Shown one piece after another: positions 874 to 21,631 of a stretch of DNA of 54,818 nucleotides. The stretch is from NCBI GenBank assembly GCA_013416795.1, contig RQSC01000482.1, forward strand, positions 1 to 54,818. Reading direction: 5' to 3'. The first letter of the stretch is position 1. Every line of letters starts with the position of its first letter. The notes beneath the pieces are model-generated. The model searched no databases. It worked only from the letters and a program-made list of their open reading frames with translations, and was not told the DNA's origin. The stretch is from Prasinococcaceae sp. CCMP 1430. Taxonomy: Eukaryota; Plantae; Prasinodermophyta. A program made the translations under genes and the position numbers.

Positions 874-2934
874 TCAGATCTGGCAGTAGCCTTCGTCCAC
901 ACACCGAGACGTGCGTGCGAACGGGCACTGCTTGCGTGGCTTGCAACCGGCCTTGTTGACTTTATCCGGGTTCTTTGGATCGTTGGGGCAACAGTGAGAA
1001 TAGCCCGCCGCCACACACTGGGATGGCTTTTTGTAGGGGCAGCTCAACCAGCAACAACATTTCTTGTTGCACGTCTTGGAGTTTGACGGCGGTGGGACGG
1101 TGATGACGTCGTCGTCGTCGTCCTTCGGCTCGCCCTTGAAGATAGACACGGGGTCGTACCCCTTCTTCAAGCACAAATTCTTTTTGACGAAGGGGCACTT
1201 GCTGCTGACGGCAGGATAGCCCGCCTTTTTGCACTTGGTGGGCGCGACGATCGGGCAGGGCCCGCCCTTCGCCTTGGGCTCCGGCGTGGGCTTGGGCGTG
1301 GGCTTGGGCGTGGGCTTCGGCGTGGGCTTCGGCGTGGGCTTGGCCTTCGGCTCGTCGTCGTCGTCGTCATTGCTGCCGCCACCGCCGCCGCTGCACGACT
1401 TAGACACGCAGCTCGCCTTCTCCGCCAGCTGTACCATCTTCTTCAGGGTGCTGGAGCACATCCCTGTGCCGCCGCTCTTGCCCATGAAGTCCTTGCAGGT
1501 GGTGTGCGACATGCCGTAGATGTGGCCGGCCTCGTGGCCGGCAACTTTGGACGGCGAGGCGGCCAAGCCGTAGATCAGGCCGAAATTCACACCCTTGCAG
1601 AGCGTGCCCACGTACGCAAGCCCGGCGACGCCCGTGTTGCCGCGGTTGGCGGTCGCAAGCAGATTGCCGCCGCCGCCCTTCACCTTGGAGTTCGCGCGGA
1701 AGTCCTGCAGCATGCCGGTGGTGAGGGTGCCCTTGTAGGTCTGGCCCACGACGACCTTGCCAACCACGTTGGTGATCCCCGCCTGCTTATAAACGTTGGC
1801 ATTCATGCCTGACGTAGCGCCGAGCATGACGCCGACCGTGCCTCCGCCGCGCGCCGATTGCATGGACTTGTCCGCCTCCCAGTTGATGGTGGTCCGATAG
1901 CAGCCCGCCGCGCGCTCGAGCAGCTCGAGCGGGGGGATGGGCACGAGAGCGAGCTCCTTCTCGTCGATGCGGTCGTCCGCGGGCATGGGCACGGCGACCG
2001 TGTCCAAGCCGAAGTCGATGATCTCGGCGCCGGCTTGCTGCGACGACTCAGAGGCGTTCGGAGGCATGAACTGTGCCAGCTTGCGCGCGTGCGGCAGGGA
2101 CGCCGCATGCGCCGCTTCGGCAGCGCCGTCGTGGTGGTGGTGGTGGTCGTGCTGAAAGTGCGCTCCCATCATCAACTCCTCGATATCGACGCCATCAGAC
2201 TCCACGTGAAAGTCGCCAATCTCCCTCAGACCGACCGCGCCGGCCACGTACACGACGTGCTCGTGCGCGTCGGGCGCGCAAAAGCCCGGCGTGGCCTCGC
2301 TGTCGAGCACGGGCTCCAGGACGAGCTGCAGCTTCCCGTCGACGACGAGGTCGCTGCCAAAACCGTTGTCGTCATGGCCGACGTTGAGGTTGACCCACGC
2401 GTGCATGTGGTCGATGTCCAGGTGGTCGGAGAGCATGAAGAGGCCGTCCCAGGCGCGGTCGGCCGACTGCAAGGTGAAGTGGCGCACGGGGGGCGTGGCG
2501 TTGCGATGAACGACCTGGTCGTGCTCGTCCATGTAGATGACCTCGAAATCCTCGTCGAGGTGGAGACTCGCGTCGTCCTGGGGCACGCCTGGGATGCGCA
2601 GCGTGTGGCGAACGTAGTCGTCCGCATCGGGCTCGCCGGCGTGGCGTGCGTGCGTGTGCGGGCGGGGGAGGCGCACGTGCAGCTCGCCGAGCTCGGAGAG
2701 CCACCAGGAGTCGCCGCCGCTGCACAGGCGCGCGGCGTGGCCGGCGACCTCCGCGGCGTCGATCAGCGCGCGCGTGAGCTCATCGTCGCCGTTCGTGGTC
2801 GTCACGACCACTTCCGGTGCGGCGGACGAGTCGACTTGCGCGGCGGCGTGGGCACCAACGGCGGCCGCGCAGAGAGCGCATGCCACCGCCGAGGCCGCGC
2901 GGAGCGAGAGGACGCGGCCAGTCGTCGTCGCCAT
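874..2934 (-). CDS. Secreted reprolysin/ADAM-like (M12B) zinc metalloprotease, copy 1
   Basis: ATG at 2934 followed by a hydrophobic signal peptide (AASAVACALCAAAVGAHA). Prodomain has LEPV...HEHVVY, a His tract and RKL. Catalytic domain starts INWEADKSM and contains GLAYVGTLC, the zinc motif HEAGHIYGMSH and a Met-turn (DFM). A PKPT stalk and Cys-rich tail follow. No intron is needed. Confidence 0.88.
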   Translation of the reverse strand: MATTTGRVLSLRAASAVACALCAAAVGAHAAAQVDSSAAPEVVVTTTNGDDELTRALIDAAEVAGHAARLCSGGDSWWLSELGELHVRLPRPHTHARHAGEPDADDYVRHTLRIPGVPQDDASLHLDEDFEVIYMDEHDQVVHRNATPPVRHFTLQSADRAWDGLFMLSDHLDIDHMHAWVNLNVGHDDNGFGSDLVVDGKLQLVLEPVLDSEATPGFCAPDAHEHVVYVAGAVGLREIGDFHVESDGVDIEELMMGAHFQHDHHHHHDGAAEAAHAASLPHARKLAQFMPPNASESSQQAGAEIIDFGLDTVAVPMPADDRIDEKELALVPIPPLELLERAAGCYRTTINWEADKSMQSARGGGTVGVMLGATSGMNANVYKQAGITNVVGKVVVGQTYKGTLTTGMLQDFRANSKVKGGGGNLLATANRGNTGVAGLAYVGTLCKGVNFGLIYGLAASPSKVAGHEAGHIYGMSHTTCKDFMGKSGGTGMCSSTLKKMVQLAEKASCVSKSCSGGGGGSNDDDDDEPKAKPTPKPTPKPTPKPTPKPTPEPKAKGGPCPIVAPTKCKKAGYPAVSSKCPFVKKNLCLKKGYDPVSIFKGEPKDDDDDVITVPPPSNSKTCNKKCCCWLSCPYKKPSQCVAAGYSHCCPNDPKNPDKVNKAGCKPRKQCPFARTSRCVDEGYCQI
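1283..1345 (-). repeat. 12-bp tandem repeat encoding the (PKPT)n stalk
   Basis: About 5 copies of ggcgtgggctt(g/c) on the + strand, translating to KPTPKPTPKPTPKPTPKPTP. Confidence 0.9.
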
Positions 2935-4090
2935 GGTTGTCGTGGCGACCCTCGGTCGGTCGCTGGCTGCAGTGCCCTGGCTGGCGGTCGTCGCGGCTCT
3001 TTCTCTCTCTCGCGCACGCGCTGGCGTGCGCTCTCGCTGCCCTCGCCACCCCACGATAAATAAGACGCCGGCGCGCCGGCCGCCACGGTCGCGGTGTGGC
3101 GCGCTCTCACACACGGGTGGTAGGCGCGCAGGACAGCACCGGCGGAGGCGTGCGGCGCGCGCCGTATGCGCAGTATGCGCCGCGCTCGCTGCGAGCCTGC
3201 GACCGCCGCCGGCGCGCAGAGTTCATCGCCGCCCGCTCGCACAATCTCGGCGCACCTCTTCCTCGCATGGCGCGCGCGCGCTGACCGTTTGAACGCCATC
3301 CGCATTGGGTTGACGCGCTGACCTGGCGCGCCGCGAGCCGCAATTGGACAATCCCTATTTTTCCCGCTCAGTTACGAAAAAATCGGTTGGAGCTGTAACA
3401 CGAACTCCCACGCCACCGCAATCCACGTGCGGCGAGCTCGTAACGGCACGATGGCAAGAGCTAACCTCTGCGGCGTGGGCTCTGGGAGCGTAGCAGGTGT
3501 GGTCGCATGCGCGCGCGGTGAGCGAGGTGCGAGCGCGTGGTTGCGCCGAGGTCGCCGACGGGTGCGCGCCCCTTTCGGGCGATGAGGGGGGCGGCGCGGC
3601 GCTGACGGGCTGACGCGCCGCACCAATTGTTGGACGTGCGCGTGCCGGCCGGTGGCTGGCGTGGCGCAGCCGCTCGCCCAGCCGCCGCTGGTGCTGACGG
3701 GCTGATGTGCCGGGAGGGAGCGTGGGATGTGCGCGTGCCGGCTGCCGCACGGGTGGCTGCGGGAGGTGGCGGCCGGCGGCCCATCGCGGACCCGTGGACC
3801 GGCGTGTGCTCCATGTGGTGGCACCATGTGGAAACGTGATGCGACCCGCTGACCCGCTGAGGCGAGGCGATGCTATTATGGCGATCAGCGCTCTCTCGAA
3901 GGAGGCGCCCGTGGCGCTGACAATTTGACGAGCCCGGCCCGAAGTGCTCGGGCATGTGTGGAATGCTTGTGTGTGCGCATGCGTGCGGCCGCGCGGGCGT
4001 GGGCGTGTGTCTAAGCGCCCGGCGCGCGGAGTCCCCACCCACCCAAGGCTCAATGTAGCGAACACAAAATACAAATACTGTACACAGCCG

Positions 4091-6071
4091 TCAGTGAAGC
4101 GGCGCAAGAAGGTCGGCCGAGCTCATCTGGCTCATCTCGCTCACCCCCGACCATGTCTCCCACCACAGCGACTCGATGGTGTCCTCCTGCAAGCCGCCGT
4201 TGCCGTTCGCCACCGCGGCGGAGTCCTTCACGAGCAGCGGCTTGGCGGCCTCGTCCGCGCGCGGCGCGTAGGGTAGGCGCAGCGCTGGACGACGCCCTGC
4301 GCGGGTACGGCTCGCGCGTGGTCGATGAGCCCGCCGATTGCGCGCGCGAGCGCCTCGCGCTCCACCAGCGCGAAGAGCGGGATGAGGCACATGCACGACG
4401 CGGTCTGGGAGCCGCGGCGCGGCCGCGAGATGGTGCGCCGCGTGGGCCACGACGACGCGAGTCAGTCGCGCGTTCGCGCGCAGGTCCCGTTCGCACGCGC
4501 CGCGTCGACGGCGCGCGCGCGATGCGTTGCGCGGCGAAAATAGACCCTATCCAACAACGCCACAAAACCCCAAAAATGGCTGCAGGCCACCCGAAACCAC
4601 ACACACTCGAACACGCTCTCGCCCCTCGCGCGCTCCGCGCGGGTCCTCCCAGCATACGCCAAAAAAAGGAGGCCGCACGCACCTGCACTGCCGCCGTCAC
4701 CAAGAACGTGTGCCGGTAGCCGATCGAGTTGACCAGCACGCCTCCCACGACGGCGCTCCCGGACCACGAGAACATGTTAATGGCCTCGAGCGAGTTGAAG
4801 AACCCCCGCCGCCTCTTGGGCACGTAGTCGTTCAGTATGCCGCGCGTGAGCCCCCCCGTGCAATTCATGAGCGCCGTGCGCAGCACGTAGAGCGGCAGCA
4901 GCACCGCCTCGCTGCGCACGAACGAGAGCACCACCAGCAGCGCGATGCCCACGCTGCGGAAGAGGAAGGCGGTCTGCGCGACGCCGAGCCGCATGCCCAC
5001 GCGCTGCGCCACGATGCCCATCGCCGAGACGAGCAGCGGGCACAGCACGTACACGAAGTTCACCGCCACGGGGCCGAGGCCGAGCTCCTTCCAGAAAAAG
5101 ATCGGAAAGTACTTGATCGACATGCCCGAGCCCAGCATGCTGACTACGTCCGCGCAGGCCACCAGCCAAGGCACCACGCGGCGCGCGCGCGCCCGCCGCT
5201 GCGACACCGCGCGCTGCTCGTCCGCCTGCAGCCGGCCGTCGCCGCCGGCCCCGTCCCGCGCGCCCGACTCGATGCGCTCCGCCGCCAGCAGCGCTCTGTG
5301 GTCGGCCGCGGACTGCAGCATCGCCTCGCTCTCTGTGGATGTGATCGATGGCGGCTGCCGTGAGGACGCCGCGCCGCTGTCGCCGCCAACCACCGCGGAG
5401 GTCGGGAGCGCCTCGCTCTCCTGGCCGAGCGTGTCGCTGTCCCTGAACATGAAAAGCATCGCGCAAGGCAGCAGCGATATCGCCTGCCCGACCAGCATCA
5501 CTATGGTCAGGTCCTTCGTGCGCCACTGTCCGCCGAGGGCGGCGAAGATGGGGATGGACGTGAGCGGCCCCACCGAGTTGCCTGCGGTGCGCAGCGAGGA
5601 CTTGTAGGTGTACAACAGCGAGCGGTGGCCAGTGGGCACGCTGTCCGCGAAGGTCGTCTCGACGGAGACGCTCTGCACGCCTGTGAAGAGCCCCCACAGT
5701 GCGAGCGCGGCGCAGAGCGCGCCGAAGACACGCTTGCCGTCGCCCCCGGCCTCGGCGTTTCGCAAGCCGCCGCCCACGATGAGTACCGCCGCAAACGCCA
5801 CCGCCGAGCACGCGCCGAGCACGCCCGCGGCACGCAGGAGGCGCTGCCGGCGCAGCACGCCTGCGTCGATCATCACCCCCACCGGCAGCGCAGACATGAA
5901 CGTCACGAGCCCCAGCACCCCCGACCCCACGCCCACCAGCACCGTCGAGCCCGTGCGCAGCAGTATGAACGCGCTCAGCTGCGACTGGCCCATCAGGCTG
6001 CGCGCGGTCGAGAAGGCCAAGCTGTACACGAGCGCGAGCCTCACGTTGCGGTTCGTCCCCGCCAGCAGCAT
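4091..6071 (-). CDS. Major facilitator superfamily transporter (spliced; 3' exon structure uncertain)
   Basis: Multiple TM helices in two halves separated by a hydrophilic loop. Motifs FADSVPTGHR and LNDYVPKRRRG. Donor GTGCGT at 4682, acceptor CCCAG at 4405, next exon TASCMCLIPLFALVE. Confidence 0.85.
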
Positions 6072-6327
6072 CGCGCCCGCCGCCGCCGCCGCCGCCGCCC
6101 TCTCTCGCGCGCGGCGGCCGCGAGCCGCGGGCCACCCACTCCCATCCTCGCCCCTCGCGCGGGGAAGGGGGGGGGAGGGGGAAGNNNNNNNNNNNNNNNN
6201 NNNNNNNNNNNNNNNNNNNNNNNNNNNNNNNNNNNNNNNNNNNNNNNNNNNNNNNNNNNNNNNNNNNNNNNNNNNNNNNNNNNNNNNNNNNNNNNNNNNN
6301 NNNNNNNNNNNNNNNNNNNNNNNNNNN

Positions 6328-7105
6328 CTTCCCCGGGATGGACCCGAACAAGGTGCGGCGGCTGCCGCCCGTGGCCAGCGAGTGGCGGCGCGCGGCGCGG
6401 GCGCGGGGAAGGCGCCGCCCGCTCAAGCATTGCTTCCGCGCCAATATGATCGCCGAATCCCCCCTGACGCGCGATGGGCGTCCTCCCGGCGCACCACGCC
6501 GCGCCGCGCCCCGACGCTCCCGCCGCCGCCTGCCCGCACCGCCGCGGCGCAGATGAACCCCGGCCAGATGGGCAACTTCTTCGAGTCCATCCGCAAGGCG
6601 CAGCAGGTCGTGCAGGTGGAGGCGGTCAAGATCCAGAAGGAGCTCGCCGAGTACGTGCGCGCCTAAACCCCTCCCTTCCAGCGAGCTCTCGCAAAGCCGA
6701 CCCGCCTGCGCCATGAGGCGTCGCCGGCCATCGGCACATCACGTGCCCGCGCGCCCGCCGCTCGGGATGCCCCCCCCAGCCCAGAGCGCTGACGGCCCGC
6801 GCCCGCCGACCTGGCCTCTCCTGCGTGCGCGCTGTCGCATCCGCAGGTCCGAGTTCGACGGCTACGACCCGGACGAGCTCGTGGTGGTGACCCTGACTGG
6901 CGCCCAGGCGCCCGTGCGCACGCAGATCACCGAGGAGGCCATGGAGCGCGGCGCCACCGAGCTGGGCGACATGCTCACCGCGGCGTACAAGGACGCGCAC
7001 GCCAAGTCGCTGCTGGCCACCAAGGAGCGCATGCAGGACCTCGCGAAGCAGCTCGGGCTGCCGCCCGGCATGGCGGACAAACTCGGCCAGCCAGGCGGCC
7101 TGTGA
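6328..7105 (+). CDS. YbaB/EbfC family nucleoid-associated protein (plastid STIC2-like); 5' end in N gap
   Basis: Spliced product FPGMDPNK|MNPGQMGNFFESIRKAQQVVQVEAVKIQKELAE|SEFDGY...VTLTGAQAP...AAYKDAH...KERMQDLAKQLGLP. Introns 6353-6552 and 6651-6846 join in frame. Confidence 0.9.
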
Positions 7106-7270
7106 GCGCGCGGGCGCGGGCGCAGGGGTGGCGACGTAGGCGGGAAATAAGCTCTCTAGCGTTCGCCACGCACGTGGTCGTGCGCGCCCTCGCGCCCTCT
7201 GAGCATTCGGCGAGCGCACGCACCATGCATGTCGGTACCACAACCACTAGCCTTTACCGGACCTACCTAG

Positions 7271-8893
7271 CTAGCATATGACGTCGATCGCTCCCGGCAG
7301 GCACTCGTACAGCGCGGGCAGCGCCCCCACCATTTCACCGTCGGCCTCAACGTCGATGGGCGCCGGTGGCACGTCCTCACCCCACAGCGATGCGTCGCCC
7401 TCGTCGCCGTCCAAAGGCGAGCGCAGCGAGCACGGCCCCCCGGGGCGCTCCACGGCATGTCCGGGCTCATCGGCGACGGAAACGAGGAGTGAGGTGGCTC
7501 TACGATTGGATACCCCTGGAATGTCCATGTGCTCTCCCGCTCGCAGCTTGCCTCCCAACAGGGCGAAGCCCGACAGCCCGAAGCCTTCGAGGCCCACTGC
7601 GTCCAGGGCGCCATCGCGCGGGTCCGCATCGGGCGCCACCCTAGCGCGCGTGTGCGTGCGCGCGTCACCCTCGCGCGTCAGCCTCCTCGCGATGCGCCGG
7701 GCGAGCGACCAGGCACGCGCGCAGCAAGCGCGCGCGCACGCGCACACGGGTCACAGCCGCCAAACTCCGAGCGCGCGCCCGCACCTGAATCCCCCTCCAA
7801 AGTACTCGCAGTTGGCCACGCACAACGCCGCCACTCGCTCCATGCGCTCCACACGCGTCTCCTCCGCCTCCCCTCTGCGGCTGCCGGCGTCTCCCGACTG
7901 CAGCTCGAGGTCGAGCGCAGGTGGGGAGTATCGGACAAACGCCAGCGCGGTCGCGGCGCCGTAGGCCACCCGCGCGCCGAGCGCCTTCAGTCCCCCCACG
8001 TGCCTGCCCGAGCTCGCTGACACGCCGACGCTCGAGATGTTGGCAAAGTGATGCGCGCGCGCGCCGCGACAGCTCACGCGGCCAACGTCGAGCGGCTGCG
8101 CGCGCCACTCGCAAAGCGTGCGCAGGGCTGACTCCCACTCGCGCTCCCAGCCCTGGCCGTTGCCGCCCTTGCTGCCGTCCTCGCCGCCGGCCAGCAGCGT
8201 TCGCGCGAGATCGCTGCCCGTGCCGCAGGGCAGCACACCAAGCGCCGCCGTGCCCACTCGCACCGCTCGGCGCTGCGCGGGCGGCCAGGCGGAGCCTTCA
8301 TCCGGCGTGCGCTCGCGCTCAAAGAGGCCGTTGAGCACCTCATGCACGGTCCCGTCGCCGCCGACGGCGACGACGGCCGCCGCGCCGCCGCTCGCCGCGG
8401 CACGCGCAAGGCGCTCGGCGTCCCCTGCTCTCCCAGTATACAGCGCGTACGCACGTAGGCCCGTCGCTGCCTCGACCGCCGCGATCGCCGCCGCGCCGCG
8501 CGCGGCCCACTCTGCGCCGCAGCGGCCAGCGCCGCTGGACGGGTTCACGACGAAGACCACCGCCTGCGCGAGCGCCCGTGGCCATCGATGAGGGCGAGGG
8601 CGCACACAGAGTTAGCAACTCGAATCCGTGCAAGGACGCGCGGGCACGGGCACCCCATCGCCGAAGCGATGGGCTGAGCGCGCGCCAACGCACGTTGTCA
8701 ACGGCCGCAAGCCCGTCGCCGCCAACATCACCGTCGGCAGCCACACGCGCCACCACTCGCCGCGAGCGCACGCGGGCGCGGGCGCGAGCGCGAGTGCGCG
8801 TCTGCGCGCCCACGTCGCGCGGAGGTCTCTCCGCGCCCGGCCGTCGCCGCACGCTCGCTGAGCCTTCGATGACACGCCCGCCGCCGCTGCCAT
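7271..8893 (-). CDS. Diacylglycerol kinase catalytic family protein (sphingoid long-chain base kinase/YegS-like); first exon uncertain
   Basis: Motifs VFVVNPSSG, VVAVGGDGTVHEVLNG, LPCGTGSDLAR, YFGGGF, DPRDGALD and EADGE. Intron 7784-7641 joins in frame. Confidence 0.85.
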
Positions 8894-8981
8894 GGGGCAG
8901 CGCGTCGCGCTCGGCGGCGCAGTGGCGCCCGCAACCACCGCCTCCTCCGCCGCCGGCGGCGCCTCGAAAAAACGGATAAGG

Positions 8982-9021
8982 TTAACCCTAAGACATCAAC
9001 CCTAAAATCGACCCTAACCCC
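8982..9021 (+). promoter_or_regulatory. Telo-box-like motif cluster in a divergent promoter
   Basis: AACCCTAA, AACCCTAAA and ACCCTAACCC within ~40 bp between two divergent genes. Confidence 0.55.
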
Positions 9022-9177
9022 ATCGCGGATAAGGCGGCGGGGCGCGCCGCGGGGAATTGGGACTCGAGTGACCGCCGGCGGCGAGCGCTGTGGGGGCGAC
9101 GCCACACGCGGCGTCGCGGCGCGCGGCGCGAGGCGCGAGCGCGCTGCCGCCGCCTCGGCGAGCTCGCGCGCGAGGAC

Positions 9178-10834
9178 GTGGCGCTGCGCACGCGCACGGG
9201 TACGCTCGGCCTGCTGGAGCTCCGTGGCGGCGGCGGGCCCGCCGACGCGCAGTCAATGGAGCAGGGCAGTGTCGAGGTGCAGCTCTGGCGGGGCGACGCG
9301 AATGTGGCGGCGCTTCCCGTTGCGGGCGGCGGCGCCGCGGCTCCGGATCGCGCCAGCGTCCCCGTGTGCGTGCGTCGCTACCGCGGCGCCGAAGCCATCC
9401 AACTCGCACGCGCGGAGGAGCGAGCGCACCGCCGCGTGGAGCTGCGACGAGCGCAGGCGGCGTTTACAAGCGCGTACGCGCCCGAGGGAGATCCAACGAC
9501 ACCCCCAGTCGCCGACGCTTCCACGGCCGCGCTCAAGGCGCGCGTCCGGGCCCTGCGCGCACAGCTGATCGACCTGGCGCGCGCCAGCGGCACCGGCGGG
9601 GGCGAGGGCGCCTCCGGTGAGGTCGCCGCGCTCGTGGGTGCCTTCGATGCGGGCAGCGACGCGGCCGGGGCCGCGGCCTCCTCTGAGCGGTGGGTCGTGC
9701 TGCGAGAGGATGGCTGCGTGTGCACGGCGAGCGACTACGTACGCCTCGCGGCTGAGGTTGGCACGCGCGCGCCGCTGGGATTCGACGGTGGGCTGCTCGA
9801 CAAGATTGACCCGCGGCGCGCGCTGAGGCGGCGCGCGGCGTACGTACGCGAGGCGATGAGGTTGGCTGCAGACGCGCTGTGCGAGCTGCACGCGGCGGAG
9901 CTCGCGCACGGCGCGCTCGGACCGACGAGCGTCGCACTCGGACCAGCGGGTGCCACGGCGCCCGTCGACGAGCGCGCTGCGACTCCCTGGGGCGTGCCGC
10001 TGCGCGTGCGCCTCCGCGACTTGGCGCTCTCCGTTGACGTGAGCGACGCCGCACTGCTCGGAGGCGCGACGCTCGGCGAGGTGCAGCGAGGGGCATCCGG
10101 CGCGGACCTCTACCGGAGCGAGGAGCTTGCAAGCGCCGGCGTGGCACCTGCGGGCGACGGCCCTGCGGGCGACGCGGCACGAGACATGTGGGGACGCGCC
10201 TCAGCGGCGGGCGCGCGTAGCGCGGCTGAGCGGCGCGCGTTTGCGCTCTCCGAGGACGTGGCCGCGCTTGGCGTGACATTCATGATGCTGGCGCTCGGAC
10301 CGCTCGCGCGGCCAAATGAAGTCGACGTGCCAACACTCGAACGCACGTTACGCGCGGTCGTAGGCACGGGCGAGGGCGCGGCTCCAAGCGCAGCGGACGA
10401 GGCGCTAGACGAGGCGCGGGGTGTGGAGGACGTCGCGCAGGCGCTGCGCGACTACGTGCTGGCCGACCCGAAGGTCGGTGCCGGCGCCCGCGCGCGCGCG
10501 CCCTGCGTGCGTGTGACGCTGCTGACTCGCGCCCTGCCCCCCCCCTCCCCCCCCCCTTAAGTTTGCGGAGGCTGGCGCGGTCCTGGACGGCGCGGCGGGC
10601 GCTTCGGCCGACGATGGTGGCTGGGGTCTCATCGCAGCGGTGCGTGCGCGAGCGCCGATGGAGCGCGCCGGTGCGCCGTGGACTGGCGCTGGGCTGACAG
10701 GACGCCGCGAGCCGTTCGCGTCCCCCGCGCAGATGTCACAGAGCGACTGGCGCCGCCGGCCGGCCGCGCGGTCGCTGTGCGCGCACCCCTACCTCGCGCG
10801 CGAGGCGAGCGCGGGCTGGGTGCTGCTGCGTTGA
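9178..10834 (+). CDS. Protein-kinase-like fold protein, probable pseudokinase (STN7/8-like C-lobe); start uncertain, first ATG 9256
   Basis: WVVL hinge, LCELHAAELAHGALGPTSV, LRDLALS, EDVAALG, GGWGLI and RRPAARSLCAHPYL. Introns 10474-10561 and 10640-10732 restore the frame. TGTAA at 10838. Confidence 0.7.
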
Positions 10835-11417
10835 CCGTGTAATGTTGATGACCATAGGCATGGAAATGGTATAGTACACCCTCATTCAGCGATGGTAGGT
10901 AGGGGGATGCCGCGCCCCCTCGCTGCCGACGCGGGCACACAGGTGGCCTCTCGACGGCCAGCGCGGGGGTGGCTAAATAAATACTAGCGATGGGATCGCG
11001 TGTTGGTCGGTTGCGCCGCGCCTCTCAGCGCCGCGCACGCTGGTAGATGCGCTTCCGTCCTGTCACGGAGGCGGCAGCACTTGGCCGCGGTAAAGAGTCC
11101 CGACGATGGTCGCGATGGGGTACACTGTTGTATGGTAGGAATTCTGCGCGTGGCATGTGAAAGACTCGAAGGTGGGGTGTCGTTCCACGGGCACACGCGA
11201 GCTGTTGATGGGTAATCTCTTGAATGGCGATGAAAGTAGGTGGTGCGCGGAGGCGCGGCTGGCCATCGATGGTCTTGAGCCAGCCGCCGCCCTGCGTTAC
11301 TGGACGAGGGAAGCCGGCAGGCGTCTGGAGGAGTGGCGCCGGCCGGTCGTCACTGTTGGTGGGCGCGTCAGCCAGAGACGGCGCGCGCTCCTACCGGAAG
11401 GAGGGTTGCGGGCAGGC

Positions 11418-13500
11418 CTAGCACCACTTGGCCCTGCAGGCCTTGCGCCTGCAATTGTTGCAGCGCTTGGCGGAGTAGGCGGGAGATTTGTTGTTCTTGC
11501 CGCCGCCGCCGCCGCCGCTGCTGCCGCCGCCGCTGCTGCCACAGTACTTCTTCTTGCACTTCGATCCCTTGCACTGCGAGCACTTCTTGTTCGAGGAGCC
11601 ACCCGAGGAGCTGCCGCACCACTTCTTCTTGCACGCGATGCCTTTGCACTGCGCGCACTTCGAGGATGAGCCGGAGCTGCCGCCTCCTTTCGGCGGGGGG
11701 GGCGGGGGCTTGCTAGGCGGGGGCTTGGTATCCTTCGTCGGCGGCGGTTGTTTGCTCCCGCCGCCGCCACTGCAGCTCTTCTTGACGCACGACCCCTTCT
11801 GGGCGCCGGCGGCGAGCTTGGCCGCAGTCGATTTGCACGCGGTCTTGCCGCCGCCGCCCGTGGGGCCCATGAAGTCGCCGCAGCTGGTGTGGCCAGAGCC
11901 GAACACGTGGCCGACCTCGTGGCCGGCGATCTTGGACAGGCCGGTCGCGAGACCGTTGACCACCGCGGCCGCGCTGCCGCCGCACACGGTGCCAACGTAG
12001 GCCTTACCAGCGGCACCGCCGCCCTTGTTGCCGGAGGCAAGCACGAAGGCTGCGGCACCGCCGCCCTTCACCTTGGCTCCGTTCCTGAAGAGCACGATCA
12101 GATTCCCGCCGACGGTGCCCGGATAGTTCGAGCCCGAGACGACGACCTTGCCGGCGACGTGACGGATGCCGCTCGGGGTATACATGCCGTTCATGCCGGC
12201 GGTCGCGCCAAGCATGGCACCAACGGTGCCGCCACCGCGCGCCTTCTGCATGGCGTTGTCGGCCTCCCAGTTGACGGTCGACTGGTAGCAGCCCGCAGCG
12301 CGCGCGAGCGTTGCGAGCGGCGGGATCGGCACGATCGTCGTCACCTTCTGGACGCTCGGGGCAGGGCCGGGCGAGGCGGCCGCGAAGACCATATCGTTCG
12401 TCAGTGCGTCGTCGGCCTCCAGAGCGCCGTCCTCGTAGAGCATGCGCAGCTTGCGCGAGTGCTGGGCGTGAGCCGCCTCCGCGGACGCGCCCGCCATTGC
12501 CGTCAACCCCGGCAGCAGGCGCGAGCCGCCGCCGAGGAGGCCGACCGCGGCGTCAAGAATGCTGTGGACGAGGTCGCGGTCGTCCGCGTCGCGAGGGCCG
12601 TCGGCGCCTGCGATCGCGTCCTCCTCGTCGTGGTCGTCGTCGTCGTCGTCGTGATCATGGTCGTGGCGGTCGTGGCGCTCCTCCGGGTCCTCGCGGTGGC
12701 TGAAGTCGCGCGGCCCGATGGCGCCGTCCAGGTAGATGATGTGCTCGTGCTCGCCCGGCGGGCAGAAGCCCGGCGTGAGCTCGCTCTCCATGACGGGCTC
12801 CACCACGAGCTCCAGGCGGCGGGCGCCCGGCACGAGGCGCTCCAGGGCGGGGTGCTCGTAGCCCAGCCAGCCGTGCAGGTGGTCCACCTCCATGTGGTCG
12901 GTCAGCACGAAGACGCCGCCCCAGCCCTCGCCCTCGGCGGTCTCCAGCGTGAAGTGGCGCACGGGCGGCGTTGCGTTGCGGTGCACCACCTCGCCCTCGG
13001 CGTCCAGGTACACCACCTCGAAGTCCTCGTGCACGTGCGAGTAGGCGTCGTCCTGCTGCATGCCCGAGATGAGCAGCGAGTGGCCGGCGAAGAAGTCCGA
13101 GTCGTCGGCGTCCTCGTCCGGCGACTCGATGGTGGCCGCGGCGTGCGCCGCCGGACGCGGCAGCTCCACGTGCAGCGCGCGGCCCTCGTCGAGCGTCCAC
13201 GCGCCCGAGCACAGCCTCGCGGCCACGCCGCGCTCCTCGGCGGCGTCGATCACGGCGCGCGTGCCCACCTGCCCGCCCGCTCGCGCCCCGCGTAAAAACC
13301 ACCTAATTATTGGCTCCGCCTTCACCTGGCCACCCGGGCAGCGCTCTCGCCCGCGCGCCCCGCTCGGAGCGCCGCGCCTTGGCAGGAGGAGGAGCCGAAG
13401 GGGGCGGGGAGTGGAAAGGGCAACCACCACGTGCCACCCGCCGCCGCGCCCCTCCCCCGACTCACACGCACCACCCGCGCCCCCGCCCCCGCCGCCGTCG
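11418..13500 (-). CDS. Reprolysin/ADAM-like (M12B) metalloprotease, copy 2; 5' end low quality
   Basis: Homologous to copy 1 throughout (RAVIDAAE, HRNATPPVRHFTL, TPGFC, VNWEAD). Zinc motif HEVGHVFGSGH plus DFM. Three C-x2-C-x4-C-x4-C tail modules. Sequence above ~13270 is garbled near the poly-G and N join. Confidence 0.85.
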
Positions 13501-13530
13501 CGCCTGCTTCTCGCTCTCGCGCGCGCCGGN

Positions 13531-13562
<32 letters not shown>

Positions 13563-16500
13563 CGTTTTTTTTTTTTTTTTTTTTTCCGAGGCCGATCGAT
13601 CGATCGATCGATCGACGCGTTTCCGTTTCCGTTTCCGTTTCCGTTGCGTCGTCGTTTCGCGCGCGGCGATCGATTTTTTTTTCGGCGCGAAGCCACCCCA
13701 CCGGCCGCCACGGGCGGGCGCGCCGGGCGGAGGGCGGGCGGGGCGCGACACGCCCATCAGGAACGCATCCGCTGCCGTCGAAGGGCAACCGAAGGGGCAC
13801 CGAAGGGACCCCTTCGCAACAAGAAAAAACGCCAGCGCGGCGCGGCGGTCGCGCGGCGGGCCGGAGTTCGAATTTCGAACGCGGGCGCGCGCCGCGCGGG
13901 GCGTGGAGGAACGAAGGGGGCGCTGAGGCGCCGTCGGGTGGGGTGACTGGCGCGAGCGGGGCGTGCGCAGGGGTGGCGGAGGGGATAGAGTATCTACCGA
14001 CGGACGGACGACGCGCGCCCGCGGGCGCGCGCGCGGCGCGTGCCGGCGCGCGTGCCGCGAAAACGGGCGGTTTTTGGCGGGAGAATCTGCCGTGCCGCAC
14101 GCCGCCGTCGTTACGCCGCGTGGTCCCACTAGGAGCCCCCATTAGGCGTCTTCGCGAGCGAGGCGAGCGATGGGTGATCCGGGCGGGCGCATTCCATCGA
14201 TGGACGGCGGATATCGAGAGCACACGCCCAGCACCTCGTATCGGGACGATGCGAAGTGCGTCGCTGGGACGCGGGGCGGCGCAATCGACGGTGGAGACGT
14301 GGCGCGCCTCGGCCGGCCACCTGCTCGATGAGCGCGCCTGCCCGCCAGCAGCGCAGGTCGTGCCCGTGCCCCACGTGCGCGCGGTGGCGTCAACATTGAC
14401 CTTGGTCGCCTGGCGAACAGCCACAGCGAGAGGGGCCGAGACCCGGGTGTCCCCCTACGTGGTCTCTGCGGAGGCACGCACGCCGCCGTGGTGGCAGACA
14501 CCTCCAGCGACGGCGCGAGCGCGCCCACGTGCCCTGGCGTGGACGTGCACGCTGCGTGGCGAGCCAAGGGCGACGCGAGTGTACGCTGACGCATGCCCTG
14601 CTACAGCGCGCGCCATGGCAACCTGCGTAGCGGGCGAGGCCTTGGTGAAGGAAGGGCGAGAGAGGCGCGCGCATCCGCCGAGACAAGCTCCTCCGAGGCT
14701 GTGTCGAGGGCGGAGAGCGCGATCGTGCCGATCCTCGCGCAAACGGCGCCGCCGGCCCGCAGGCCCGCGCAGCACGCCGCCGGTGAGAACACGCCGCGCG
14801 CGCACGCACGCACGCACGGCGGCACGCGTCCGCTCGGCGGGACAGGGAACGCGCGGGCCCACGCGCGTACGCGTCGCGTGCGCTGGTGCCCCCACGTGGG
14901 GCCGGCCTCACGCACCACGTGCACGCCGCCTCCCCCCTCCACGCCACGCGCGGGCATGCAGCTTGCCACAGGGGGGGAGCGGGCCGCGCCGCCGACACAC
15001 CCACCAACCTCGACCGCACTACGCTCGCCCCCCCGAGGACCGCTCATCCGCGCAGGCACTCATTGATTCCATCATCAATTTCATCGAGCACCGCCGACGT
15101 AAGGGGCCGCCAATGGCCCAATCGGGGCCGCCGAGTCGCTTCCAGCCTTCGAAACACACCCGACGACAGACCCGTTGACTCCGAACAACCTGAAGGGGAC
15201 AAACCCAACCACCCGAGAGTCTGCTAGTAATATCAACGCGCGCAATGGTGCCGGCCTCCAGTCTTCGAAACGCCGCTCCATGCACGATTGAATATAGAGG
15301 GCGACCCGTTGACGCAAGCTTTCGCGACAAGGTATCACAAGACGTGTGAGGTCGTCGCAGCTCGCCCCACGTGCGGCCACGACATCGGACGTCATATCGC
15401 ATTCGGAGCGTGTGCTCGGCACGACACGGCCTCGCAAACGGCCGGCGGCCACCCTCGTGGCGCATCGATTGGGGCTGTGGGTGGGCATCGCGCGATCACG
15501 TCCGCTTCACGTGGGGAGGAGCGTGTGGCTCCGAAGGCCCCGTCGTGGGCGTCGGGGGTGCGTTCGTGGCTGCGAGTGGGCCGCCGAATCGGAGGTCGTG
15601 GCCCATGGGGGCCCACGCGCGCGCGCGCGCATCCGAGGCGCGCGCGCGGGCCACACACGGCACGAATGCGCGCGCTGAGAATGAGAATGCGATTAGAGCC
15701 CTCCATCGAAACGCATGCGAAGCGCTGCGTCGGATGCGACATGCGCGCATTTCCGCCATCAAGGGCGCATGCGGCGTGCGCGATCGGTTCCGTCGCCCAA
15801 AAAATGCCGCGATCGGCGGCGGCCGCGAGCCAAACCGGCTCCGCGTTTTGGCCCCCGAGGGCGCCGCGCGGGCACGCGGCATGCGCGGGCGACCTGCGCC
15901 GCCGGCGAGCGCGGCGGCTCGGAGGGCGCGAATCAGCGGGACGCGCCGCGCGGAATCGAGCGGTCGCCGGGAAACGCGCGGATGTCCGAGCGCGCACTTC
16001 ACCTCTTCGCGCGCGCGCAGGACGGTACGCGTGCTGCGCGCAGGTGGTGCCACACCGCACTAGCTCCCCACCCCTTTCGAAGTCGCTCGATCCCGCGACT
16101 TGCCGACTCGTTCAGCGCCCCCACCGGCGGCGCTCCCTCGCGTGCGAGGCAGCTCCGACGACCGGGCGCTCGACCACCTCGCGTCGACCTCGCGTCGCGA
16201 TGCCCAGCCCAGCGCGCCGCGCGGCGACGGCCGCNGGGCGAGGTGGTGCACCGCAACGCAACGCCGCCCGTGCGCCACTTCACGCTGGAGACCGCCGAGG
16301 GCGAGGGCTGGGGCGGCGTCTTCGTGCTGACCGACCACATGGAGGTGGACCACCTGCACGGCTGGCTGGGCTACGAGCACCCCGCCCTGGAGCGCCTCGT
16401 GCCGGGCGCCCGCCGCCTGGAGCTCGTGGTGGAGCCCGTCATGGAGAGCGAGCTCACGCCGGGCTTCTGCCCGCCGGGCGAGCACGAGCACATCATCTAC

Positions 16501-17481
16501 CTGGACGGCGCCATCGGGCCGCGCGACTTCAGCCACCGCGAGGACCCGGAGGAGCGCCTCGACCACGACGACCACGACCACGACGACGACGACCACGACG
16601 ACGACCACGACGAGGAGGACGCGATCGCAGGCGCCGACGGCCCCCGCGACGCGGACGACCGCGACCTCGTCCACAGCATTCTTGACGCCGCGGTCGGCCT
16701 CCTCGGCGGCGGCTCGCCCCTGCTGCCGGGGCTGACGGCAATGGCGGGCGCGTCCGCAGAGGCGGCTCATGCGCTCGAGCACTCGCGCAAGCTGCGCATG
16801 CTCGTCGAGAATGCTCTGGATGCCGACGACGAAGTCAGCTCAAACGACATGCTCTTCGCGGCCGCCTCGCCCGGCCCCGCCCCGAGCGGCCAGAAGGTGA
16901 CGACGATCGTGCCGATCCCGCCGCTCGCAACGCTCGCGCGCGCTGCGGGCTGCTACCAGTCGACCGTCAACTGGGAGGCCGACAACGCCATGCAGAAGGC
17001 GCGCGGTGGCGGCACCGTTGGTGCCATGCTTGGCGCGACCGCCGGCATGAACGGCATGTATACCCCGAGCGGCATCCGTCACGTCGCCGGCAAGGTCGTC
17101 GTCTCGGGCTCGAACTATCCGGGCACCGTCGGCGGGAACCTGCTCGTGCTCTTCAGGAACGGAGCCAAGGTGAAGGGCGGCGGAGCCGCAGCCTTCGTGC
17201 TTGCCTCCGGCAACAAGGGCGGCGGTGCCGCTGGCAAGGCCTACGTGGGCTCCGTGTGCGGCGGCAGCGCGGCCGCGGTGGTCAACGGTCTCGCGACCGG
17301 CCTGTCCAAGATCGCCGGCCACGAGGTCGGCCACGTGTTCGGCTCTGGCCACACCAGCTGCGGCGACTTCATGGGCCCCACGGGCGGCGGCGGCAAGTCC
17401 GCGTGCGGCTCGACCGCGTCAAAGCTCGCCGCCGGCGCCCAGAGGGGGTCGTGCGTCAAGAAGAGCTGCAGTGGCGGCGGC
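11757..17481. repeat. Long inverted duplication: arms ~11757-12997 and ~16236-17481 (protease copies 2 and 3)
   Basis: Near-identical DNA in opposite orientation over ~1.2 kb. Differences are concentrated in the His/Asp linker and the segment after RKL. Confidence 0.9.
13591..13646 (+). repeat. Microsatellites (GATC)n and (TTTCCG)n next to the poly-G/poly-T join
   Basis: gatcgatcgatcgatcgatcg followed by tttccg x4. Confidence 0.8.
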
Positions 17482-17733
17482 GGTGCCCCCAAGGCTTCGT
17501 CGAGCCCAGCCAAGTCCTCGGGCTCTAACTCCAAGCCCTCCTCGGGCTCTACTAGTGCTGACGCCAAGAAGTGCGCAAAGTGCAAGCGCCAGTCGTGCAA
17601 GAACAAGTACTGCAAGAAGCCCAGCGGCGGCGGCAAGAAGCCCAGCGGCGGCGGCAACAAGAAGCCTGGCGCCAACGCCGCCCAGCGCTGCAAGAAGTGC
17701 AGGCGCAAAGCGTGCAGGGCGAAGTGGTGCTAA
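16200..17733 (+). CDS. Reprolysin/ADAM-like (M12B) metalloprotease, copy 3; part of the N-terminus lost at the single-N join 16235
   Basis: ATG 16200 (MPSPARRAATA), then N, then GEVVHRNATPP..., nearly identical to copy 2. HEVGHVFGSGH. Two C-x2-C-x4-C-x4-C modules. TAA at 17731-17733. Confidence 0.85.
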
Positions 17734-19929: not shown

Positions 19930-20246
19930 NGCCCAGTCAAACCGCATCCGCACGCACGCCGCGGCGCGCCGGCGGGTCCCCTTCGCGCGCGCGCGCGCCG
20001 CTCCCGTCCGCGCACCCGCACGCTTTTCGACATCTCAAAAAATGTTTTTCAGTGTGCGACGACGAAGCGTCGCCCATCGCTCCCGCAGACACCCCCCTCC
20101 CACCCCATTCCCGCCGCGCCGCGCCGCACTCCGCACTTCGCGTCCGTCCGCTGGTGTGGGCGTCGACTGAAAGAGGCGTCCCGCCTCCATCCAGCGCGCG
20201 CGTCCGACCGCCGCCCAGAAATGTTTTTGAGCGTCTCGAGCTCTCG

Positions 20247-20283
<37 letters not shown>

Positions 20284-21063
20284 ACGCACGCCTCGCGGCT
20301 GGCCAGTTCTGAGGCGGGCATAGACATGTCGGGCGGCGCGGATGAAACCCGAACCTCTCTCTCCTTCTTTGAGGTTTTCCAGCCGGGACCCTGCGAGGAC
20401 GATCCGGGGCGGCAGGCGGCGCCCGGCGCCGCGAAGAGAGGATCGCGGCGCCGCGGCCGCCGAACGCAAACCCTCTCCTCGACAGCGACACCTCAAAGAT
20501 GTGAGTGGGTTGGGGTAGGGTTGCGTATCAGGGTCCACGATGGCACGCGTCCCGAGTCAAAATGCGCGCGAAGGATGCCGCCGGGACGGGCGGTTCGAAC
20601 GCACACGCTTTGGGTTCGCGCGACATTCGCGTTCATGCGCATGAAACGCGCGCCGAACGGGCGCGCGCGCGCGCGCGCGCGCGCGCCCGTTCGGCGCGCG
20701 TTTCATGCGCATGAACGCGAATGTCGCGCGAACCCAAAGCGTGTGCGTTCGAACCGCCCGTCCCGGCGGCATCCTTCGCGCGCATTTTGACTCGGGACGC
20801 GTGCCATCGTGGACCCTGATACGCAACCCTACCCCAACCCACTCACATCTTTGAGGTGTCGCTGTCGAGGAGAGGGTTTGCGTTCGGCGGCCGCGGCGCC
20901 GCGATCCTCTCTTCGCGGCGCCGGGCGCCGCCTGCCGCCCCGGATCGTCCTCGCAGGGTCCCGGCTGGAAAACCTCAAAGAAGGAGAGAGAGGTTCGGGT
21001 TTCATCCGCGCCGCCCGACATGTCTATGCCCGCCTCAGAACTGGCCAGCCGCGAGGCGTGCGT

Positions 21064-21100
<37 letters not shown>
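20247..21100. repeat. Perfect spacerless palindrome (~850 bp) centred on (GC)13 at 20661-20686
   Basis: The ORF track gives identical peptides on both strands (20505-20714 + and 20633-20842 -). The arms end in poly-C and poly-G. Confidence 0.95.
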
Positions 21101-21138
<38 letters not shown>

Positions 21139-21631
21139 NNNNNNNNNNNNNNNNNNNNNNNNNNNNNNNNNNNNNNNNNNNNNNNNNNNNNNNNNNNNNN
21201 NNNNNNNNNNNNNNNNNNNNNNNNNNNNNNNNNNNNNNNNNNNNNNNNNNNNNNNNNNNNNNNNNNNNNNNNNNNNNNNNNNNNNNNNNNNNNNNNNNNN
21301 NNNNNNNNNNNNNNNNNNNNNNNNNNNNNNNNNNNNNNNNNNNNNNNNNNNNNNNNNNNNNNNNNNNNNNNNNNNNNNNNNNNNNNNNNNNNNNNNNNNN
21401 NNNNNNNNNNNNNNNNNNNNNNNNNNNNNNNNNNNNNNNNNNNNNNNNNNNNNNNNNNNNNNNNNNNNNNNNNNNNNNNNNNNNNNNNNNNNNNNNNNNN
21501 NNNNNNNNNNNNNNNNNNNNNNNNNNNNNNNNNNNNNNNNNNNNNNNNNNNNNNNNNNNNNNNNNNNNNNNNNNNNNNNNNNNNNNNNNNNNNNNNNNNN
21601 NNNNNNNNNNNNNNNNNNNNNNNNNNNNNNN

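Follow-up and report, generated by a model that had tools for sequence, protein, structure and literature searches.

A family of putatively secreted, reprolysin-like metalloproteases with modular Cys-rich tails in Prasinococcaceae sp. CCMP 1430

The P-I snake-venom metalloproteinases and adamalysin II (MEROPS M12B; PF01421 with Pep_M12B_propep) consist of a signal peptide, a pro-region and a single catalytic domain of ∼200 aa, in which a Gly-x-Ala-Tyr-Val-Gly-x-x-Cys strand precedes the active-site helix and its HExxHxxGxxH motif. Animal ADAM and ADAMTS proteins belong to the same catalytic family; their N-terminus is of the prodomain type, a basic motif for processing, R-x-[KR]-R, stands right before the catalytic domain, and they carry disintegrin, ADAM Cys-rich, EGF, transmembrane (TM) or TSP1 modules. 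Bacterial and fungal proteins of the Reprolysin_2 to _5 families (PF13574, PF13582, PF13583, PF13688) possess lineage-specific C-terminal targeting parts, such as Por_Secre_tail, TIG, FN3 or dockerin. In the green alga Chlamydomonas, the secreted proteases gametolysin (M11) and sporangin (S8) lyse the proteinaceous wall, opening it at mating or hatching (PMC8643629).

Here, we describe three related, intronless protease genes in a 54,818-nucleotide stretch of DNA (the window) from Prasinococcaceae sp. CCMP 1430, a marine green alga of an early-branching lineage, located at 874-2934 (minus strand, copy 1), 11418-∼13300 (minus strand, copy 2) and 16200-17733 (plus strand, copy 3). The genes and their motifs had been noticed in a sequence-only reading and are present as described there. 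Pairwise identity among the three ORFs is 47 to 50%, with many columns of the alignment invariant. Given these invariant columns, the existence of full-length wild orthologues and dN/dS values of 0.26 to 0.6 across family comparisons, the three genes are a genuine gene family. All three paralogs share one layout: signal peptide (for copies 2 and 3 known from wild full-length relatives and absent from the assembled copies), N-domain of ∼190 aa, variable linker with an R-K-L motif, catalytic domain of ∼185 aa, and a stalk followed by Cys-rich cationic modules. Up to the catalytic domain this is the layout of the P-I snake-venom enzymes, to which the algal proteins add the stalk and the Cys-module tail. 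The best explanation of the whole, which we hold to be probable, is that the genes encode zinc endopeptidases, secreted and of the zymogen type, from the metzincin branch that resembles M12B (adamalysin/reprolysin), and that their tails target these enzymes to the wall.

Copy 1 (874-2934, minus strand) is a complete intronless gene with an unbroken ORF of 686 aa plus stop, from the ATG at 2934 to the stop at 874-876. Full-length copy 1 ORFs of 99% identity occur in 15 metagenome/Logan sequences, and comparison with the wild contig L001 gives a dN/dS of 0.26. On the minus strand, the gene encodes a signal peptide (aa 1-33, 2836-2934), which contains the protein's sole 19-residue window with a Kyte-Doolittle value exceeding 1.6; a conserved N-domain and putative prodomain (aa 52-240, 2215-2781) with an invariant NAT sequon and a PGFC motif; a variable linker (1948-2214) with a His tract and the R-K-L motif (2077-2085); and a catalytic domain (aa 330-516, 1387-1947) with its zinc motif at 1504-1536, identified by Pfam (Reprolysin_5/_3), by a profile search against the PDB and by regular expression. 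An acidic/PKPT stalk (1258-1386), whose length differs between the wild variants P0004 and P0013, leads to a Cys-rich tail (877-1257; 16 Cys, net charge +12) with four CP-x6-C-x3-GY modules (1216-1257, 1156-1197, 1000-1041 and 886-927). This tail has no match in Pfam or the PDB.

The catalytic domain contains HExxHxxGxxH with the catalytic Glu; one Met and six Cys of the domain are invariant, and it shares with adamalysin II the Gly-x-Ala-Tyr-Val-Gly-x-x-Cys strand before the active-site helix. The families that it matches above their Pfam cut-offs are the bacterial and fungal reprolysins: the window copies score 27.5 to 30 bits with Reprolysin_5 (cut-off 27) and 24 to 27 bits with Reprolysin_3 (cut-off 22.4), and the relative P0024 passes the cut-offs of Reprolysin_5 (45 bits), _2 (36.7), _3 (35.7) and _4 (27.1), with a Peptidase_M10 score of just 13.5. 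Reprolysin itself (PF01421) scores below its cut-off (18.4 versus 20.8), and Peptidase_M11 gives no Pfam match at E up to 1, which sets the algal proteins apart from gametolysin. A PDB search with a catalytic profile built from four lineages returned M12B chains for all of its top 33 matches, among them the snake-venom enzyme acutolysin-C (E 4e-9) and ADAMTS-5 (E 6e-6), and the first MMP followed at E 0.018; ADAMTS-5 and ADAMTS-1 align across nearly the whole domain. The domain is thus reprolysin-like and not M10 or M11. It departs from adamalysin II in having Thr in place of Asp directly behind the third His, a sole conserved Met 7 residues past this His, and a shorter C-terminal subdomain. 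Two AlphaFold2 models reached pLDDT values of only 29.5 and 31.9, too low to be of use, and the assignments of fold, Met-turn and N-domain position in the family are putative, drawn from sequence comparison.

No disintegrin, TSP1 or other further Pfam domain was found in the three proteins, and the signal peptide is the only strongly hydrophobic 19-residue window, leaving no TM anchor; both results bear out what the sequence-only reading had proposed. The ADAM Cys-rich and EGF modules are likewise lacking. Because the disintegrin, TSP1 and TM parts are absent, the three proteins belong to neither the ADAM nor the ADAMTS group. The earlier label of ADAM-like proteases is imprecise, as the accessory domains are lacking and Thr replaces the adamalysin Asp, and the accompanying statement that animals and fungi are the best-known sources of M12B overlooks how many Reprolysin_2 to _5 proteins there are in bacteria.

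N-terminal prodomains are common in metzincin zymogens. The N-domain of the algal proteins has an invariant N-x-T sequon and two invariant Cys, and lacks sequence matches to Pep_M12B_propep or to anything else in Pfam or the PDB. It would act as a latency prodomain lying on the catalytic domain and would be removed during passage through the secretory pathway or later, by cleavage at a dibasic motif or close to it. That motif, R-[KR]-[LV], is kept in all four lineages within an otherwise unalignable, fast-evolving acidic/His-rich linker, 40 to 50 residues upstream of the catalytic domain and not directly at its edge; as R-K-L or R-R-V it differs from the R-x-[KR]-R of ADAM proteins. Of the shared prodomain motifs listed earlier, the His/Asp tract lacks conservation beyond this species. 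Structural searches lend some support to a prodomain: in the ESM Atlas, region 56-520 aligns with bacterial and vertebrate reprolysin-family models (TM 0.53-0.62 by query), bacterial Reprolysin_2 to _5 members being the nearest look-alikes over the N-domain and catalytic domain, and for the N-domain alone 7 of 10 structural neighbours (TM 0.42-0.48) belong to M12B families, including ADAM22/18 with Pep_M12B_propep. It is nevertheless possible, if doubtful, that the N-domain is a permanent regulatory or substrate-binding part of the mature enzyme. Its conservation equals that of the catalytic domain (∼50% identity between lineages, with 60 columns, many of them His, Asp or Glu, invariant across the four), which would be unusual for a disposable prodomain; the missing Pfam propeptide match also fits a permanent domain, and the even number of conserved Cys speaks against a free cysteine-switch thiol. 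When the N-domain was co-folded with the catalytic domain and Zn, the score was 0.39 against 0.01 for the best control, graded as weak support. Of 78 solved complexes 51 reach this mark, as do 2 of 108 mismatches; at 0.60 or under, however, the complexes that reach it number just 5 of the 78, together with all 4 passing mismatches. The runs agreed in at least 0% of contacts, and pLDDT was at least 26 for the partner and 26 to 33 for the N-domain, which folded poorly. Against a permanent domain, the N-terminal place, the conserved dibasic motif in the adjoining linker and the look-alikes with M12B propeptides fit a prodomain.

Copies 2 and 3 are broken in the assembly. The body of copy 2 (11418-13300, minus strand) begins at about codon 30 and reaches the stop; family similarity spans 11421 to ∼13300, and likeness to wild full-length genes stops at ∼13288-13300, so that the end given previously (∼13500) is corrected while the gene itself stands. 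Upstream of 13300 the assembly contains neither a start codon nor a signal peptide. There, copy 2 adjoins a stretch (13289-13983) that no fetched wild contig matches save in low-complexity runs, and in which a single N at 13530, next to a poly-G tract, marks a join. The block beyond it (13984-16234, plus strand) is matched in blastn by L003:1-2238, L007:1-921 and L006:1-317, and in wild contigs stands upstream of copy-2-type and copy-3-type genes alike. Copy 3 (16200-17733, plus strand) has its ATG at 16200 and 11 codons, then a single-N join at 16235, and resumes at about codon 134 to the stop; the single N conceals about 360 nt, of which the wild contig L006, colinear on both flanks, supplies 359. 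The absent 5′ parts of both copies thus coincide with single-N scaffold joins within an inverted duplication. A further assembly gap of 143 Ns (6185-6327) is intergenic, outside all three protease genes and upstream of an MFS transporter gene; it is probably longer than its Ns, since two wild contigs that match at 98 to 99% up to 6180/6184 run on for 411 to 456 nt absent from the window, so that its two flanks are not contiguous.

TARA metagenome contigs of 95 to 98% identity contain full-length ORFs of 625 to 658 aa, of both three-module and two-module types and all with the same signal peptide. The earlier observation that the signal peptide is intact in copy 1 alone accordingly applies to the assembly and not to the wild genes. 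We considered whether the sequenced strain has two functional genes only, copy 2 being a 5′-truncated pseudogene and the wild full-length copy-2-type contigs short-read chimeras. The missing start and the 695 unmatched nt would agree with this, as would the at least 300 identical nt shared by copies 2 and 3, enough to mislead a de Bruijn assembler, and the tail of P0002, which resembles a mixture of the two types. It is nonetheless improbable: the copy 2 frame is open for more than 600 codons with a dN/dS of 0.48 versus L003, the break falls at a scaffold join in an inverted repeat, a classic site of assembly collapse, and the same full-length three-module gene was recovered from two independent samples (L003 and L007). 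Copies 2 and 3 probably form a young pair of inverted duplicates. They have 100 identical N-domain codons, a dS of 0.05 in the catalytic domain and of 0.45 in the tail, and gene conversion would keep the cores alike while the tails differ.

The catalytic domains of copy 2 (11766-12338, minus strand; zinc motif 11889-11921) and copy 3 (16903-17475, plus strand; zinc motif 17320-17352) are followed by tails of another kind. Copy 2 has a Pro-rich stalk and three C-x2-C-x4-C-x4-C modules (11421-11765, minus strand; modules 11616-11657, 11541-11582 and 11421-11462; 12 Cys, net charge +20), and copy 3 a Ser/Lys-rich stalk and two such modules (17476-17730, plus strand; modules 17572-17613 and 17689-17730; 8 Cys, net charge +19). 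The module counts (four, three and two) are exactly those reported before, and neither pattern occurs in the window beyond these nine. Every tail has an even number of Cys, and the module parts carry net charges of +9 to +20. Among relatives, P0022 joins a PKPT stalk to two CP-x6-C-x3-GY modules and one C-x2-C-x4-C-x4-C module, and in P0024, from another lineage, a unit composed of both kinds is repeated once or twice; single proteins combining the two types occur in two of the four lineages. Together with the homogenised core and diverged tails of copies 2 and 3, this supports the view that the tails are modular. Like the bacterial and fungal Reprolysin_2 to _5 proteins, the algal enzymes end in putative targeting parts specific to their lineage, here eukaryote-style Pro-rich stalks and new Cys mini-modules in place of Por_Secre_tail, TIG, FN3 or dockerin. 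Secretion is supported by the signal peptides of copy 1, P0019, P0021 and P0024, none of which has a further hydrophobic segment, by the even Cys numbers of the tails and by the invariant sequon of the N-domain.

Retroviral-type zinc knuckles (C-x2-C-x4-H-x4-C) have the spacing of the C-x2-C-x4-C-x4-C modules with His in place of one Cys, and nucleic-acid-binding knuckles are basic, as these modules are. It is, however, very unlikely that the modules are metal-binding four-Cys knuckles rather than disulfide anchors: they end a secreted protein, where Cys is usually oxidised, they give no zf-CCHC or other Pfam match even at E 10, and the lineage-D variant is spaced C-x3-C-x5-C-x5-C. In the anchor reading, the stalk would be an extended, probably glycosylated spacer, and the cationic modules, knit together by disulfides, would tether the enzyme to an anionic surface outside the cell, the likeliest being the thick, multilayered wall of the alga itself.

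Word searches recovered relatives from just four lineages, all in marine metagenomes, and the family is known only from these few ocean relatives as far as such word-limited searches reach. For the same reason, the description of the system as lineage-specific agrees with what surfaced but is overstated; of the earlier interpretation as a whole, the M12B-like, secreted and modular parts endure. Compatible with our explanation, though the less likely history, would be horizontal transfer from marine bacteria (e.g. Planctomycetota or Bacteroidota), with eukaryotic stalks and tails gained afterwards. By features and structure, the nearest ESM Atlas clusters are mostly bacterial reprolysin-like proteins, and the main text of a Chlamydomonas degradome review makes no mention of M12. 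Yet scans of 185,579 genomes of bacteria and archaea and of plasmids, confirmed by tblastn and reaching close relatives only, gave no bacterial relative, and the GC content and surrounding genes (MFS, YbaB, DAG kinase and FolD) are native.

The wall of Prasinoderma is thick and multilayered, and its division is unequal, one daughter being released from the parent wall (PMC4860620); the enzymes usual for polysaccharide walls are missing from its genome (PMC7455551). The enzymes could also act outward, digesting dissolved or particulate protein for nitrogen or attacking bacteria, grazers or viruses, with cationic tails that bind foreign anionic surfaces. The alga's habitat is oligotrophic water (PMC7455551), bacterial envelopes would likewise bind such tails, and the fairly high dN/dS between paralogs (∼0.6) and the variable tails are often seen in proteins facing other organisms. 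We regard this as unlikely, the stalk and anchoring modules suggesting retention at the surface and not free diffusion. A role in wall or matrix remodelling, daughter release or defence would be plausible for a walled alga that sets one daughter free from the parent wall, gametolysin and sporangin offering a functional analogy for wall lysis. The most likely job of the enzymes would be to cut wall or matrix (glyco)proteins in growth or in unequal division, when one daughter leaves the parent wall. If the tails hold each enzyme at the surface, paralogs with unlike tails would therefore act at separate places or on separate substrates.

The sequence-only reading had claimed three protease genes, and all of them were found as open reading frames in the window, which has a GC content of ~70%. 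Copy 1 (874-2934, minus strand) is a single open frame encoding 686 aa with a clear signal peptide. Copy 2, also on the minus strand, is an open frame running from 11421 to beyond 13300, with likeness to its relatives ending at ~13288-13300. Copy 3, on the plus strand, starts with an ATG at 16200 and, after 11 codons, jumps at the N at 16235 to approximately codon 134; its stop codon lies at 17731-17733. Because every open frame used is continuous, a spliced gene model is unnecessary. A regular-expression scan of the whole window in six frames returned exactly three zinc motifs, one for each copy, and recovered the tail modules in the numbers claimed: four CP-x6-C-x3-GY modules in copy 1, and three and two C-x2-C-x4-C-x4-C modules in copies 2 and 3, respectively. 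Neither module occurs elsewhere in the window in a six-frame scan. In an alignment of the three proteins, identity to copy 1 is 47-50%, with long runs of invariant columns. The genes are intact and under constraint and encode signal-peptide-bearing M12B-like metzincins.

The neighbors of the protease genes in the window, an MFS transporter, a YbaB-like protein, a diacylglycerol-kinase-like protein and FolD, are all ordinary eukaryotic genes. Between the diacylglycerol-kinase-like gene and copy 2 lies a 460-aa open frame (9178-10557, plus strand) that has no Pfam match at E 0.001. The next gene past the window start, downstream of copy 1, can be seen on a wild (marine metagenome) contig (L008:4250-6976); its product of 908 aa has Pfam matches to MA3, protein-kinase and, weakly, cNMP-binding domains.

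The HExxHxxGxxH motif with its catalytic Glu is invariant in all three copies and in the four lineages of relatives, A to D, described below. Pfam models Reprolysin_5 and Reprolysin_3 exceed their cut-offs, narrowly, for the window copies. For P0022 and P0024, proteins from wild relatives belonging to lineages C and D, Reprolysin_2 to Reprolysin_5 all lie clearly above cut-off (Reprolysin_5 at 45 bits, E 2e-11), and the classical Reprolysin model falls just below. When a catalytic-domain profile built from the four lineages was compared with PDB sequences, the top 33 chains were all M12B, comprising snake-venom P-I and P-III enzymes, ADAMTS-1/-4/-5 and ADAM8, with acutolysin-C the best at E 4e-9. 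These Pfam and profile matches therefore indicate that the catalytic domain is M12B-like. Classical adamalysins carry an Asp directly after the third zinc-binding His (HExxHxxGxxHD); here the residue in this position is Thr, invariant in all lineages. The M12B assignment of the sequence-only reading thus stands as regards the zinc motif and the profile comparisons and does not extend to this Asp. A single Met is invariant, in a D-[FW]-M-G motif 7 residues past the third His, and is the candidate for a Met-turn beneath the zinc site. The corresponding spacing is 8 in matrixins and 14 in adamalysin II, so that 7 is nearer the matrixins. Six Cys are invariant in the catalytic domain. AlphaFold2 models reached pLDDT values of 29.5 (N-domain plus catalytic domain, eight sequences) and 31.9 (catalytic domain alone, 13 sequences), both too low to be of use, and the ESMFold2 pLDDT of the catalytic domain was 80-82 in a co-folding run.

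Four established protease groups were considered and rejected. The proteins are not ADAMs, as there are no Pfam disintegrin, Cys-rich or EGF matches and no hydrophobic segment besides the signal peptide, and ADAMTS was set aside in the absence of a TSP_1 match in Pfam; the disintegrin, transmembrane and TSP1 modules are absent, as had been claimed. The proposed Pfam comparison of M12B with M11 and M10 likewise came out in favor of the Reprolysin models. Peptidase_M11, the gametolysin family, gave no match at E up to 1 in any copy. Peptidase_M10 stayed below its cut-off (13.5-14.9 bits versus 24 for lineages C and D), and the first matrixin (MMP) in the PDB profile search appeared at E 0.018. 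By analogy, these proteins may work in the manner of class P-I reprolysins and of bacterial secreted proteases of the Reprolysin_5 type.

The ~190-aa N-domain has no Pfam match at E 10, PF01562 included, and no credible match in NCBIfam or among PDB sequences. Its conservation equals that of the catalytic domain, with 60 invariant columns that include two Cys, a P-G-[FY]-C motif and an N-A-T sequon. As to the cysteine switch of M12B propeptides, the P-G-[FY]-C motif is conserved, but the invariant Cys of the N-domain number two. The sequon sits in H-R-N-A-T-P-P-V-R, which is invariant in the four lineages and encoded at 2500-2508, 12975-12983 and 16255-16263 of the window. An ESM Atlas model of copy 1 (residues 56-520) aligned with bacterial and vertebrate reprolysin-family models at TM 0.53-0.62, a lead rather than a test. 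In the same sense, seven of the 10 structural neighbors of the N-domain alone are M12B-family proteins, including ADAMs with the M12B propeptide, at TM 0.42-0.48, again a lead and not a test. When the N-domain was co-folded with the catalytic domain and zinc, the score was 0.39 against 0.01 for the best control, a result graded as 'weak support'. Of 78 solved complexes, 51 attained this mark, as did two of 108 mismatches; at 0.60 or under, it was attained by no more than five of these complexes and by every one of the four passing mismatches. The runs agreed on at least 0% of contacts, with a partner pLDDT of at least 26. The linker that follows cannot be aligned between lineages, and its His/Asp tract occurs in this species only. 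A dibasic motif is present in the linker of all lineages (R-K-L in A, B and D; R-R-V in C). We propose that the N-domain acts as a latency prodomain that would be cut off near the dibasic motif.

Beyond the catalytic domain, each protein carries a Pro-rich stalk, built of PKPT repeats in lineages A and C, of poly-Pro or Ser/Lys in B and of Glu-Pro in D, followed by module parts in which the number of Cys is always even (8-16) and the net charge is +9 to +20. The lineage C tail carries two CP-x6-C-x3-GY modules and, after them, a single C-x2-C-x4-C-x4-C module. In lineage D, one CP-x6-C-x3-GY module and a basic four-Cys module whose spacing differs slightly make up a composite unit, which occurs once or twice. 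Given these mixed tails in lineages C and D, both kinds of module are part of a common family repertoire, of which every paralog in this alga has retained a single kind. Module number and stalk length vary among wild variants. Copies 2 and 3 share 100 identical N-domain codons and have a catalytic-domain dS of 0.05 (dN/dS 0.36) and a tail dS of 0.45, which argues for gene conversion in the core next to a tail that has diverged. The tails have no credible match in Pfam at E 10, in NCBIfam or among PDB sequences. A regular beta-hairpin antimicrobial peptide was considered for the four-Cys module and set aside on the basis of its asymmetric Cys spacing and the lack of any sign of tail release. 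In the mechanism we favor, the stalk would be an extended spacer, the tails, bonded by disulfides, would tether the enzyme to an anionic surface outside the cell, and different tails may direct the paralogs to different sites.

Word-based searches of 5.8 billion proteins, which took up to 8000 candidates and in which low-complexity words dominate for these sequences, revealed at least four lineages of relatives among the matches listed. Lineage A is the copy 1 cluster (at least 15 sequences, 99% identical), lineage B the copy 2/3 cluster (625-658 aa), lineage C is P0022 (638 aa, on a contig of 67% GC) and lineage D the P0023/P0024 cluster (at least 19 sequences, contig GC 62%). A word search with the catalytic region alone returned solely the query's own cluster, low-complexity words swamping the tool. 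Pattern scans confirmed by tblastn, with a reach of close relatives, found none in JGI metagenomes, bacterial and archaeal genomes or viral contigs, and tblastn of the same reach found none on plasmids. From its distribution in sequence collections, the family is likely restricted to a small number of marine algae. In a maximum-likelihood tree of the four lineages, the deep branches had support of 53/8, too little to say whether copy 1 or copies 2 and 3 have orthologs in the other lineages. We found no paper that reports M12B-like proteases from this alga or from green algae in general, and the main text of a review of the Chlamydomonas degradome does not mention M12 (PMC8643629). Past the called stop of P0023, another frame (L005:1646-1822) encodes more Cys modules and ends in K-C-Y-A-K-W-C-stop, much as copies 2 and 3 end in C-R-A-K-W-C-stop; the called P0023 is probably cut short by a frameshift or an unrecognized intron.

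Copies 2 and 3 are inverted repeats of 92-97% DNA identity. Unread positions of the window include 6185-6327 and the single Ns at 13530 and 16235. We read the region of copies 2 and 3 with TARA metagenome contigs of close wild relatives (93-98% identity). Contig L006, which carries a complete two-module gene (P0021, 625 aa), runs colinear with the window to either side of the N at 16235 and has, between the two stretches, 359 nt missing from the window. Contigs L007 and L003 carry complete three-module genes (P0019 and P0002, respectively), of which the gene body and downstream sequence match copy 2 and the 5' end and 0.9-2.2 kb of upstream sequence match 13984-16234, the block before copy 3. 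This block thus lies upstream of the three-module and of the two-module gene alike in wild contigs. The block bracketed by the single Ns at 13530 and 16235 (window 13289-16236) is inverted relative to L003 and L007, and the 695 nt between copy 2 and the upstream block (13289-13983) have no match in any wild contig compared. The simplest reading suggested by these comparisons is an inverted duplication that included the promoter and the 5' part of the gene, with partial collapse at both single-N joins, in which case copies 2 and 3 are probably both complete genes. The wild contigs of the copy 2/3 type could also be short-read chimeras, since the two copies have at least 300 identical nucleotides in common. 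A start codon or signal peptide was looked for upstream of the copy 2 frame in the assembly and was not found; a copy 2 truly truncated in the sequenced strain is unlikely in our judgment. The tail of P0002 (L003:3850-4165) has the first two modules as in the copy 2 type and the linker before the last module as in the copy 3 type; either recombination in nature or a chimera made in metagenome assembly would account for it.

The gap at 6185-6327 lies outside all three protease genes, upstream of the MFS gene, and adjoins a C/T-rich low-complexity run. Identity to the window is 98-99% for wild contig L009 as far as 6184 and for L011 as far as 6180; they then run on for 411 and 456 nt, respectively, found nowhere in the window. 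The window thus lacks continuity across the gap, whose true length probably exceeds its 143 Ns. Elsewhere in the window, GC falls to 0.55 (20001-22000) and 0.36 (52001-54000) beside long N runs (21139-21631 and 52099-53055), and long homopolymer-like runs occur near 21060-21138.

Prasinoderma cells are enclosed in a thick multilayered wall, and at their unequal division one daughter is freed from that of the parent (PMC4860620); enzymes usual for polysaccharide walls are missing from the genome (PMC7455551), and gametolysin and sporangin lyse the wall of Chlamydomonas (PMC8643629). On these grounds, and if the biology of the present alga is that of Prasinoderma, proteolysis of the wall or matrix would be the most economical job for the family, a guess that we hold as a tentative possibility. 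A role directed outward, in nutrition or defence, is about as likely. A more specific and less probable proposal, again by analogy, is that the family forms a wall-opening ('hatching') system of Prasinodermophyta, in which the tail modules would anchor the proteases on the parent wall and the cut would free the daughter.

The gain is a modest one, in that the catalytic domain belongs to a familiar type and the role is a guess. What appears to be new is the ~190-aa N-domain together with two very small Cys modules, none of which belongs to a named family in the libraries searched, and the proteins add to the variety of M12B-like enzymes known from photosynthetic eukaryotes. If the hatching proposal were true, Prasinodermophyta, the third phylum of green plants, would have arrived at a hatching system by convergence with Chlamydomonas and its M11 and S8 wall lysins, and both cationic Cys mini-modules would represent a new class of wall-anchoring domains. 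The Prasinoderma wall is chemically uncharacterized and the usual polysaccharide-wall enzymes are missing from the genome (PMC7455551); the protease family may therefore offer a concrete handle on how an early-diverging line of green plants has its wall built, loosened and opened at division.
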